A program made the translations under genes and the position numbers. The notes under the pieces were generated by a model. The model had not been told where the DNA came from and did not search any database. It saw only the letters and a program-made list of their open reading frames with translations. 64,000 bases of DNA, from contig NIVC01001256.1 in the NCBI GenBank assembly GCA_002269645.1, forward strand, positions 124,001-188,000, written 5' to 3'. The DNA is from Macrostomum lignano (taxonomy: Eukaryota). Positions 16,101-19,100 of this stretch are shown in pieces; the first letter of the stretch is position 1, and each line of letters starts with the position of its first letter.

Positions 16101-19100
16101 CTGTCACATTTGAGTCTGGTGCCTGTTCTCTATAGGGTTTGTTTTATTGAGCAGCTAATAATCAATCCAGTGAGCTGAATTTCCCAGATTAGCCAAGCCC
16201 GATATTGCACTGGCTCGCCCACCCGCTGTGCAAATGCTGAGCCTCCAGCTTTTATAATCCGCCCGCTGCGCCCGGCCGACTCTCGAACCGGACAGGCCGG
16301 GGTTTTGAATTGCCCACCCCCGTATTCCGTCAATATTTGGGCAGCCAGTGCTTGCGGCAGACGACACGGGAAAAGTATCCCATGATTCTGCTTTCACTCT
16401 CCCCCTCTTGCTGGCCAGCAAAAGTGTGGCATTCTTGCCTCGGCAGGGAGCAGAAATTGCGCAGCCAGATCCGCTTGTGGGGGGGGCGCCGTGACGTCTA
16501 GGAAAGTGCAAATGTCAAAGCAGATGCACGCAATGCTGGGAGCCATTAAGCTGTAGATTCTGTTTGAAAGGGACGTGTCAACCGCTCCGCGCGCCTCCCA
16601 TCTGTCTCCGAATTCTGTGGGATCCGGTTGCGACCCCCCCCCTCCTCGCCTTGGGGAATTCTTCTCACTATGGGACTAGCGGGAGGAAAGGGGCTTCCAG
16701 CCTGCTTGAGGCGGTGGGCTAATGAAGCACACCTGATGTGCGCTGCTTCTGCTGCTTTGCCGCCTCTTCTGTGATAAAGAACGCGGATTCGAAAGCTCGT
16801 TAGCTGTGCGGCTGCGCGAGTGCGGCTTCTTCCGAAGCAGCCTGTGCTGATTAAACAGAATTGGATTGACTGGTGTCTGCTGGGCGGGTATGTGCTGGGC
16901 GGGTATGTGCTGGGCGGGTATGTGCTGGGCGGGTATGTGCTGGGCGGGTATGTGCTGGGCGGGTATGTGCTGGGCGGGTATGTGCTGGGCGGGTATGTGC
17001 TGGGCGGGTATGTGCTGGGCGGGTATGTGCTGGGCGGGTATGTGCTGGGCGGGTATGTGCTGGGCGGGTATGTGCTGGGCGGGTATGTGCTGGGCGGGTA
17101 TGTGCTGGGCGGGTATGTGCTGGGCGGGTATGTGCTGGGCGGGTATGTGCTGGGCGGGTATGTGCTGGGCGGGTATGTGCTGGGCGGGTATGTGCTGGGC
17201 GGGTATGTGCTGGGCGGGTATGTGCTGGGCGGGTATGTGCTGGGCGGGTATGTGCTGGGCGGGTATGTGCTGGGCGGGTATGTGCTGGGCGGGTATGTGC
17301 TGGGCGGGTATGTGCTGGGCGGGTATGTGCTGGGCGGGTATGTGCTGGGCGGGTATGTGCTGGGCGGGTATGTGCTGGGCGGGTATGTGCTGGGCGGGTA
17401 TGTGCTGGGCGGGTATGTGCTGGGCGGGTATGTGCTGGGCGGGTATGTGCTGGGCGGGTATGTGCTGGGCGGGTATGTGCTGGGCGGGTATGTGCTGGGC
17501 GGGTATGTGCTGGGCGGGTATGTGCTGGGCGGGTATGTGCTGGGCGGGTATGTGCTGGGCGGGTATGTGCTGGGCGGGTATGTGCTGGGCGGGTATGTGC
17601 TGGGCGGGTATGTGCTGGGCGGGTATGTGCTGGGCGGGTATGTGCTGGGCGGGTATGTGCTGGGCGGGTATGTGCTGGGCGGGTATGTGCTGGGCGGGTA
17701 TGTGCTGGGCGGGTATGTGCTGGGCGGGTATGTGCTGGGCGGGTATGTGCTGGGTGGGTATGTGCTGGGCGGGTATGTGCTGGGTGGGTATGTGCTGGGC
17801 GGGTATGTGCTGGGTGGGTATGTGCTGGGCGGGTATGTGCTGGGTGGGTATGTGCTGGGAGGGTGTCTGCTGGATGGGTATATGCTGGATGGGTATATGC
17901 TGGGCGGGTATGTGCTGGGTGGGTATGTGCTGGGTGGGTATGTGCTGGGTGGGTATGTGCTGGGTGGGTATGTGCTGGGTGGGTATGTGCTGGGTGGGTA
18001 TGTGCTGGGTGGGTATGTGCTGGGTGGGTATGTGCTGGGTGTGTGTCTGCTGGATGGGTATGTGCTGGGTGGGTATGTGCTGGGAGGGTGTCTGCTGGAT
18101 GGGTATATGCTGGATGGGTATATGCTGGGCGGGTATGTGCTGGGCGGGTATGTGCTGGGTGGGTATGTGCTGGGTGGATATGTGCTGGGTGGGTATGTGC
18201 TGGGTGGATATGTGCTAGGTGGGTGTCTGCTAGGTGGGTGTCTGCTAGGTGGGTGTCTGCTAGGTGGGTTTGTGCCGGGCGGGTGTCTGCTGGGTAGGAC
18301 TACATACAGTAGACGACATGCTTTCATTAGAGGGTGTTCCCGCTGGAGGGTTTCCCTTTGGTGGGTTTCCCTCTGGAGATTCGGCAATACCGCAACATCG
18401 GCGCCCGCCCCGCGCGGCCATCTCGCCGCCTCCTCGCCGCCCGCATTTCAGTTCTTCATCACCGGCCTGTCATTCGCAACATTCGCCGTGGGAGCGGACA
18501 AGCCGGAGGCCCGGCTGCAACTCTCATTCACCTTGTTCCTCACCTCCGTGGCATTCAAGTTTGTCATTAACCAGTCCCTGCCCAAGATTTCCTACCTGAC
18601 TTACATGGTGAGTACCGCAACTGCCACCCACCCCCGCACCCGCCAGTTCATGATCTCGGGCCTGTCGTTTGCCACCTTTGCTGTGGAGCCGCACAAATGC
18701 GAGTACAGGCTGCGGCTCAGCTTCACCCTGGTGCTCACCAGCGTCACCTTCAAGTATGTCGTGGCGCAGTCGCTGCCTCGGATCTCCTACCTCACCTACA
18801 TGGTAAGGCCTGGCCGGGTGGGGCCGCTGCTGCGCTGCCGCTCGGGGCTGCTGGGAGGGGGCGGCAGTCCTGATTGCGTGTGTGGGCCACCATGGGGCGG
18901 GGAGAGGCGGACAGACGAAGGACTGCCAGTGGCTGCTGATGGCCTTCTGAGGGCATTGAACTCTGAGATGTGGTTTTGCGGGATGGCAGTGCTACTCTCT
19001 TGTTTGGCACATCTCTTCTGTGTTCATGACAGCCAGCCAGCCAGCCAGCCAGCCAGCCAGACAGCCAGCCAGCCAGCCAGCCAGCCAGCCAGACAGACAC

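Follow-up and report, generated by a model that had tools for sequence, protein, structure and literature searches.

An Old Tandem Pair of Pore Exons, Probably Used One at a Time, in a Cys-less Ligand-gated Ion Channel Gene of Macrostomum lignano

The DNA analysed here, henceforth called the window, comprises 64,000 nt of the Macrostomum lignano contig NIVC01001256.1 (assembly GCA_002269645.1, positions 124,001 to 188,000). It contains the greater part of a gene whose product is a subunit of a Cys-less (Pro-loop) pentameric ligand-gated ion channel (pLGIC), and in which the segment from the end of the transmembrane helix M1 through the pore helix M2 is encoded twice, by tandem exons that we call A and B (18452-18607 and 18647-18802). 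It is likely that both exons are functional and that each mature mRNA carries one of them, which would give two subunits that differ in the pore. Either exon would be joined to the donor at 14837 on one side and to the acceptor at 21083 on the other, and the two products would share the ligand-binding domain, M3 and M4, but not the M1-M2 loop and the pore. A first-pass annotation of the window had already proposed that one gene makes two pores by exon choice. The proposal gains support from the constraint on both exons, from parasitic flatworm paralogues that carry a single version each, and from a nemertean orthologue whose annotated isoforms swap the same exon; for Macrostomum itself the argument is made from sequence.

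The two pore exons

Exons A and B are both 156 nt (52 codons) long and in phase 0. Each is preceded by a pyrimidine-rich tract and cag, and the donors are ATG/gtgagt for exon A and ATG/gtaagg for exon B. The exons agree in 38 of 52 residues and in 109 of 156 nucleotides, so that 47 bases (30%) differ, and 17 of the 38 codons for identical residues are not the same. By the Nei-Gojobori method, the synonymous divergence (dS) is about 1.08, the nonsynonymous divergence (dN) about 0.25, and dN/dS about 0.23, and the longest nucleotide run common to both exons is 8 nt. Because silent divergence is high and identical runs are short, the pair is best regarded as an old duplicate without recent gene conversion. 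Exon A finds exon B in a tblastn search with E = 1.4e-20, a similarity well above what chance would give, and no third copy of the pore exon was detected by tblastn within the window.

Positions -2', 2', 6', 9', 13' and 16' of pLGICs face the pore. An acidic ring at -2'/-1' shapes conductance and charge selectivity together with the 2' position, and 9', 13' and 16' form the hydrophobic gate. We numbered M2 with the conserved Arg as 0', fixed by alignment to the GABA-A gamma2 and ELIC structures. On this scale, the pore residues of exon A are E-2', A-1', R0', Q2', T6', L9', A13' and F16'. Exon B keeps E-2', R0', T6' and L9' and differs by Y-1', R2', T13', Y16', V8', V18' and A19', as well as by its M1-M2 loop and by two changes in M1. 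From 0' to 16', exon A has the residue of ELIC (RLQTSFTLMLTVVAYAF) wherever the position lines the pore. All other spiralian Cys-less subfamilies show this state too, so that exon A represents the ancestral pore type. Isoform A would thus have the ancestral, ELIC-like pore, and isoform B would combine R2', T13' and Y16' with a different M1-M2 loop. Within M2, three of seven pore-lining and three of 14 non-lining positions differ between the exons, an enrichment that is not significant by our own count. The recurrence of 13' A/T and 16' F/Y in the nemertean Lineus (see below) appears to be the stronger signal.

The first-pass annotation had described two 156-nt phase-0 exons with good splice sites and a 39-nt spacer, and its limits are exact to the base; the flanking junctions that it gave (donor after 14837, acceptor before 21083) are correct as well. 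Its identity count, with many silent differences, and its view of the pair as an old duplicate hold in the comparison above. The residue assignments that it made (Arg as 0', 2' Q/R, 13' A/T, 16' F/Y, loops GADKPEA and EPHKCEY) agree with the gamma2 and ELIC alignments.

A Cys-less channel subunit

UniProt models of M. lignano proteins, P0121 among them, served as tblastn guides and located the exons of the channel gene on the + strand of the window (Table 1). All nine intron positions, the 39-nt spacer included, are in phase 0. In the spliced model, residues 174-342 match Pfam Neur_chan_LBD with 31.8 bits (cut-off 26), and Neur_chan_memb alone stays under its cut-off (20-23 bits against 28.1). 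Among PDB structures, GABA-A gamma2 matches from the extracellular domain through M3 (E = 3e-15), and ELIC, the closest solved transmembrane domain, matches the transmembrane part (E = 7e-10). Alignments to both across M1-M3 place Arg at 0', Thr at 6' and Leu at 9' of M2.

The Pro-loop motif F/YPxD is present as FPLDVQ across the 14216/14580 exon junction, where it aligns with FPMDEH of gamma2, and Glu and Leu stand at the positions of the two Cys-loop cysteines of gamma2. Since both cysteines are replaced while FPLD is kept, the subunit is assigned to the Cys-less clade, which Jaiteh et al. 2016 (PMC4795631) described for metazoans and Johnson et al. 2023 (PMC9874803) for schistosomes. The best 120 matches listed are Cys-less-type proteins of flatworms, annelids, nemerteans, molluscs and rotifers. 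The clade is an orphan with no known ligand, and no functional characterisation is reported in these two papers (PMC4795631, PMC9874803). Glu at -2', which Johnson et al. read as a sign of cation selectivity (PMC9874803), is present in exon A (PEA-R) and in exon B (CEY-R).

The M1 proline of ELIC is replaced in the channel protein (NVFLIM/FFITG; 14810-14837 and 18452-18490), and the exon boundary adjoins this position. The proline is also replaced in all inspected spiralian Cys-less subfamilies, and is kept in a more distant relative, P0271 (YYLWNVFLPTF).

Constraint on both copies

A 748-nt contig from an ENA assembly (L008), which appears to come from a macrostomid-like flatworm, was found via a 58-residue open reading frame that is 98% identical to exon B. 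It contains, in this order, the end of the preceding exon, an intron of 165 nt, exon A, a spacer of 35 nt and exon B. Nucleotide divergence from the window is about 25%, and silent sites are saturated (dS >1). Over this distance, exon A has accumulated 39 changes in 156 nt, with 5 of 52 amino acids altered, and exon B 41 changes in 156 nt, with only one of 52 altered. The tail of the constitutive exon 5 (141 nt) has 27 changes and 3 of 47 altered residues. Exon B is thus at least as constrained as the constitutive tail, which excludes a dead duplicate.

Open reading frames and splice sites of both exons are intact in the window and in L008. The coding sequence of both is also intact in the homeologous M. 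lignano copy, which is known as protein only. The first-pass annotation's impression that both copies are constrained, which it had drawn from the window alone, is thus borne out by a second genome, and both are functional coding exons on which strong purifying selection acts in each of the two macrostomid-like genomes.

Separate genes in parasitic flatworms

Predicted proteins of the parasitic flatworms (Neodermata) fall into two pore classes. The A-type is present in Paragonimus, Fasciola, Dicrocoelium, Schistosoma and Spirometra, and the B-type in Paragonimus, Schistosoma, Trichobilharzia, Hymenolepis and Mesocestoides. The R2'/T13'/Y16' signature of exon B is common to trematode and cestode genes. 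The assemblies of Paragonimus skrjabini and P. westermani have A-type genes (L002, L003) and a B-type gene (L001) on different contigs, and no second copy of the pore exon was found in the corresponding loci of 48-57 kb.

A neighbour-joining tree built on the 52-residue exon joins Macrostomum B to neodermatan B (bootstrap 95) and Macrostomum A to neodermatan A (bootstrap 61). The split between A and B is therefore older than the divergence of Macrostomorpha from the parasite lineage. As A and B group with the sole pore exon of separate neodermatan paralogues, each pore version is sufficient alone, and the fact that the parasites keep both as separate genes suggests that both are needed. The two exons of the one Macrostomum gene are equivalent to two neodermatan genes with a single exon version each. 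A tree of the constitutive region leaves undecided which neodermatan gene is the orthologue (M. lignano joins neodermatan B with bootstrap 63).

Exon pairs in nemerteans and annelids

The orthologue in the nemertean Lineus longissimus has 11 RefSeq isoforms, which are models of the annotation pipeline and form two groups according to the pore exon, A-like (Q2', A13', F16') and B-like (V2', T13', Y16'). Isoforms X1 (XP_064647155.1) and X2 (XP_064647157.1), of 522 residues each, differ in 10 residues, all within the pore exon, and are otherwise identical; the same is true of X5 and X6, of 514 residues each. No paper describing this swap was found in the literature searched. The L. longissimus gene spans 136 kb, and the genomic layout was taken from a Lineus-like metagenome contig (L009), in which a B-like exon, a 75-nt spacer and an A-like exon follow each other, with canonical splice sites throughout. 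The B-like exon of L009 (5538-5693) has Gln at 2' (RLQLAF), where L. longissimus has Val (RLVLAF), and the two agree in having Thr at 13' and Tyr at 16'. The variant exon is thus labile at 2', with R, V or Q depending on the lineage.

The annelid Owenia fusiformis also has a tandem pair, 206 nt apart and with intact splice sites, the upstream copy of which carries R2' and M16'. Capitella has two tandem genes instead of an exon pair, and no second copy of the pore exon was found in either of them, nor in Paralvinella or Ridgeia. Related genomes had been named in the first-pass annotation as a place to look for the pair, and it was indeed recovered in L008, in the Lineus-like contig and in Owenia. 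In contrast, the pore exon never varies among the RefSeq isoforms of ten clusters (molluscs, Tubulanus and two other Lineus genes), and the alternative pore exon appears to be confined to one orthogroup.

In Macrostomum exon A precedes exon B, in the Lineus-like contig the B-like exon comes first, and in Owenia the variant copy lies before the canonical one. In the exon tree, Lineus B joins flatworm B with a bootstrap of only 57. With the order differing among phyla and such a bootstrap value, a single origin of all pairs is without support. The duplication may be single and ancient, or it may have happened several times in parallel; in both cases, this one orthogroup repeatedly carries two pore versions with differences at 2', 13' and 16'.

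Two shorter sequences were also retrieved. On a TARA metagenome scaffold from a marine animal (L010) lies one exon (148-300) that belongs to a related subfamily and has Val at 2' as well as Thr at 13' (RLVLTLTLILTVVTFKF); it is the only pore-exon copy in the whole contig, which at 901 nt is too short to inform on pairs. In an open reading frame of an annelid-like ENA contig of 557 nt (P0261), the 5' part of the homologous exon and the end of the preceding intron are present as three tandem repeats, which points to a partial triplication at this locus or to an artefact of assembly.

One exon at a time

Several points weigh against exclusive use of the two exons in Macrostomum. Searches with isoform A, isoform B and a profile of the B-type exon, in a collection that includes transcript assemblies, retrieved genome-derived models and no Macrostomum transcript, so that one-at-a-time use is inferred from constraint and from the relatives. 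Two UniProt models, A0A1I8GSY0 and A0A1I8GBW9 (P0001/P0121), join exon A straight to exon B. Spliceable microintrons occur in flatworms, M. lignano included, and those of Opisthorchis felineus peak at 37 nt (PMC6530080). A C-rich tract lies in the spacer between its consensus GTGAGT donor and its CAG acceptor, and splicing from A to B would be possible by size. Because the length of both exons is a multiple of three, nonsense-mediated decay could not remove products with both exons or with neither. The predicted RNA fold of 18400-18900 is not unusual (z = +1.0 relative to shuffled sequences).

Part of these data would also fit an arrangement in which both exons enter the same mRNA and the spacer is an ordinary microintron. 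Flatworms often have introns of about 39 nt, M. lignano reportedly among them (PMC6530080), the insert would be in frame, and the subunit would acquire an extra M1'-M2' hairpin and thus six transmembrane segments. We regard such co-inclusion as unlikely. The models P0001 and P0121 break off at an identical residue of exon B, in keeping with a truncated contig, and their fusion of A and B looks like the effect of a contig end on the gene predictor; two models of the window locus, P0016 and P0022, run from exon A to the M3 exon, and a further one, P0239, mixes pieces of A, B and intron. None of about 300 proteins retrieved from other species contains two copies, the Lineus isoforms carry one or the other, and the neodermatan genes manage with one. 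In the L008 spacer, the sole candidate branch-point adenosines are located 7-11 nt from the donor. The known four-helix bundle of pLGICs leaves no room for a second M2 and M2-M3 loop. The first-pass annotation had held that inclusion of both exons would break the four-transmembrane fold. The architecture would indeed be broken by the additional hairpin, but the topology would not, because the hairpin preserves the orientation of M3 and M4; the objection is therefore architectural rather than topological.

Alternatively, a single copy might be in use, with its duplicate a silent relic. The public models that reach the M3 exon (P0016, P0022) use exon A only, and some versions of exon 8 in the nicotinic acetylcholine receptor (nAChR) alpha6 gene of insects are barely used (PMC1919356). 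However, an unused exon would have decayed over the distance between the window and L008, whereas exon B has changed in one residue and exon A in five for a similar number of nucleotide changes, with frames and splice sites kept and the coding sequence also intact in the homeologous copy. The signature that exon B has in common with trematode and cestode genes points in the same direction, and a pseudo-exon is very unlikely. As for an artefact of assembly or collapse, or a recent exon transfer from a paralogue, the polyploidy of M. lignano is recent and hidden and its repeat-rich genome is hard to assemble (PMC10468722), which would make such an error conceivable in principle. The two copies are nevertheless far too different, in bases and in the length of identical runs, and the arrangement of A, spacer and B recurs in the unrelated L008 assembly. 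Both exons are also present in other M. lignano models (P0001/P0121, P0239), and tandem pairs occur in Owenia and the Lineus-like contig. This explanation is hardly credible, and the assembly-artefact reading was rejected on the divergence of the copies and the independent L008 contig. Functional exons, one per mRNA, thus remain the preferred interpretation.

The spacer and the enforcement of choice

If the choice between the exons is exclusive, the spacer may be what enforces it, since 35-39 nt would be too short to accommodate the donor of exon A together with the branch site and acceptor of exon B. Steric enforcement is our best guess, though one that we hold with about as much doubt as belief. 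The spacer is 39 nt long in the window and 35 nt in L008, with unrelated sequences, whereas the adjacent upstream intron measures 3614 nt in the window and 165 nt in L008. The first-pass annotation had suggested that the tiny spacer might force the choice. The conserved shortness speaks for this suggestion and the flatworm microintrons of about 37 nt speak against it, so that it is plausible only. Steric hindrance is not a general answer either, because the Owenia spacer has 206 nt. A docking or selector mechanism is without support, as there is no fold signal, the inverted repeats around the exon pair are imperfect and short (10-12 nt), and the spacer sequence is not conserved in L008.

The other eight introns of the M. 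lignano gene range from 363 to 3614 nt, and published mean intron lengths for the species are 1.1-1.4 kb. Seven of the eight carry tandem arrays scoring at least 200. The spacer stands out as spared from the minisatellite expansion, which looks lineage-specific because the homologous L008 intron has only 165 nt. At least one long tandem array lies in every intron of the channel gene except the spacer, with units of 4, 9, 15, 16, 21, 22 and 52 nt. The arrays are at 9082-10197, 11496-12257, 12691-13637, 14248-14549, 14875-16126, 16878-18294 (a 15-nt unit repeated 94 times), 19028-19379, 20229-20870, 21430-22497, 23040-23496 and 24001-24568. In a phylum that splices introns of about 37 nt, a spacer of 35-39 nt is a good test of how short a spacer must be for exclusion.

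Possible consequences for the channel

In isoform B, a ring of Arg one turn above E-2' should lower cation conductance or alter selectivity, and this isoform may act mainly in mixed pentamers with isoform A. A bolder idea, which we find attractive but rather unlikely, is that spiralians have long had the A/B cassette as a device whose two isoforms are obligate partners and co-assemble. The splice ratio would then set the pore, with a partial Arg ring at 2' beside the Glu ring at -2' that might shift charge selectivity, and the parasites would have hard-wired both versions as genes. If the isoforms did form obligate heteropentamers, a single gene of a free-living flatworm would serve in place of a pair of alpha and beta subunits, with the stoichiometry under direct control of splice choice.

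The two long-conserved pore types, Q2'/A13'/F16' (ELIC-like) and R2'/T13'/Y16', in any case provide a concrete pair to compare. Flatworms also offer a clean natural case of alternative exons and gene duplicates as interchangeable solutions. The practical interest is increased by the proposal of the schistosome Cys-less channels, which are absent from mammals, as drug targets (PMC9874803).

Gene layout, public models and neighbouring features

The exons of the channel gene are listed in Table 1. A search of the window with the N-terminal 57 residues gave no convincing match for the exon with the start codon.

Table 1. Exons and selected introns of the channel gene in the window
Feature	Position	Strand	Evidence and remarks
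First coding exon found, N-terminal non-channel region	8515-9048	+	tblastn of P0121; acceptor ...ccaaag/GAC, donor GAGAAG/gtgtgg
Exon, start of extracellular ligand-binding domain	11271-11399	+	tblastn of P0121; within Pfam Neur_chan_LBD match
Exon, extracellular domain up to Pro-loop FPLDVQ, without first Cys	14016-14216	+	gamma2 alignment: Glu at first Cys position
Exon, rest of Pro-loop (Leu at second Cys position), end of extracellular domain, pre-M1 RRPGYFYW, first half of M1	14580-14837	+	donor ATG/gtcagc
Intron upstream of exon A, 3614 nt	14838-18451	+	mostly minisatellites with 21-, 22- and 15-nt units
Exon A	18452-18607	+	M1 end, loop GADKPEA, M2 (R0' Q2' T6' L9' A13' F16'), M2-M3 loop
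Spacer, 39 nt, C-rich, gtgagtaccgcaactgccacccacccccgcacccgccag	18608-18646	+	exon A donor to exon B acceptor
Exon B	18647-18802	+	same segment as exon A; loop EPHKCEY, M2 (R0' R2' T6' L9' T13' Y16')
Intron downstream of exon B	18803-21082	+	(GACA)n and 16-nt minisatellite
Exon, M3, short cytoplasmic loop and M4	21083-21403	+	tblastn of P0121; M4 seen as hydrophobic stretch
Post-M4 exon	22926-22973	+	tblastn of P0121
C-terminal exon	23885-23962	+	tblastn of P0121
Last coding exon, TGA stop at end	24847-24993	+	tblastn of P0121

The public M. lignano gene models for the channel locus are wrong and need correction. Frameshifts, a retained intron or fused A and B exons affect A0A1I8FAG3, A0A1I8F7L4 (14580-25050 of the window), A0A1I8GSY0, A0A1I8GBW9 and P0239; one of the faulty models is named 'Anoctamin' and another 'G_PROTEIN_RECEP_F1_2 domain-containing'. 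P0016 and P0022 reproduce even intron-derived strings of the window locus. P0001/P0121 (91% identical), a second set of models, probably represent the homeologous copy of the recent polyploid M. lignano.

About 2.6 kb downstream of the channel gene, an intronless open reading frame of 311 residues (27649-28584, + strand) matches Pfam Galactosyl_T (E = 1.3e-41) and is beta-1,3-galactosyltransferase-like. Another open reading frame (40587-41336, + strand) has a C-type lectin domain (E = 3.6e-6). On the - strand, an exon at 50772-51152 matches Cupin_8/JmjC (E = 8e-15), and the introns of its host gene also have (GACA)n-type arrays.

Comparison with known systems

In alpha-tropomyosin, exons 2 and 3 exclude each other by steric hindrance, as the upstream donor is too near to the downstream branch site and acceptor. 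Steric hindrance is cited as a class of exclusion in PMC1919356. Flatworms have a far smaller limit on intron size than vertebrates do (PMC6530080), and sterics in Macrostomum are, in contrast to alpha-tropomyosin, only a proposal.

The alternative versions of exon 8 in the insect nAChR alpha6 gene reportedly cover the pore helix TM2. They are the closest likeness in that exons 8a, 8b and 8c are tandem mutually exclusive exons in a pentameric ligand-gated channel gene (PMC1919356), conserved over hundreds of millions of years, with one in use at a time and with copies lost in some lineages. The Macrostomum gene differs in belonging to the orphan Cys-less branch, in its ELIC-like pore and in occurring in other phyla. 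It has two versions rather than three, a spacer of 35-39 nt, and counterparts that are separate genes in a related lineage, and its exclusivity is deduced from sequence.

The Cys-less receptors of schistosomes and other metazoans resemble the Macrostomum protein in lacking the Cys-loop cysteines, in keeping FPxD and in having Glu at -2', and exons A and B match the pores of two neodermatan paralogues. The Paragonimus genes differ in having a single pore exon each. Splicing is not mentioned by Jaiteh et al. 2016 (PMC4795631) or Johnson et al. 2023 (PMC9874803). ELIC of Erwinia/Dickeya (PDB 2vl0, 8d67) has the same M2 residues as exon A (R0', Q2', T6', L9', A13', F16'), but it is bacterial, intronless and has Glu at -1' instead of -2'; exon B departs from it at 2', 13' and 16'.

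Full-text literature searches yielded nothing relevant on mutually exclusive exons in flatworm or Cys-less channels. The first-pass annotation had stated that no precedent was known in Cys-less channels, which holds for the literature searched, but the RefSeq isoforms of Lineus already show the swap. Lineus X1 and X2 belong to the same orthogroup as the Macrostomum gene, and in them the same 52-residue exon is exchanged, A-like for B-like (T13', Y16'). The differences are at 2' of the B-like exon, which is V (Q in L009) and not R, and in the order B-A with a spacer of 75 nt in L009. The Macrostomum gene is therefore a new example of a known trick and not a new mechanism. Its added evolutionary interest lies in the deep conservation of the two versions, in the equivalence of exons in one lineage and paralogues in another, and in the conserved tiny spacer.

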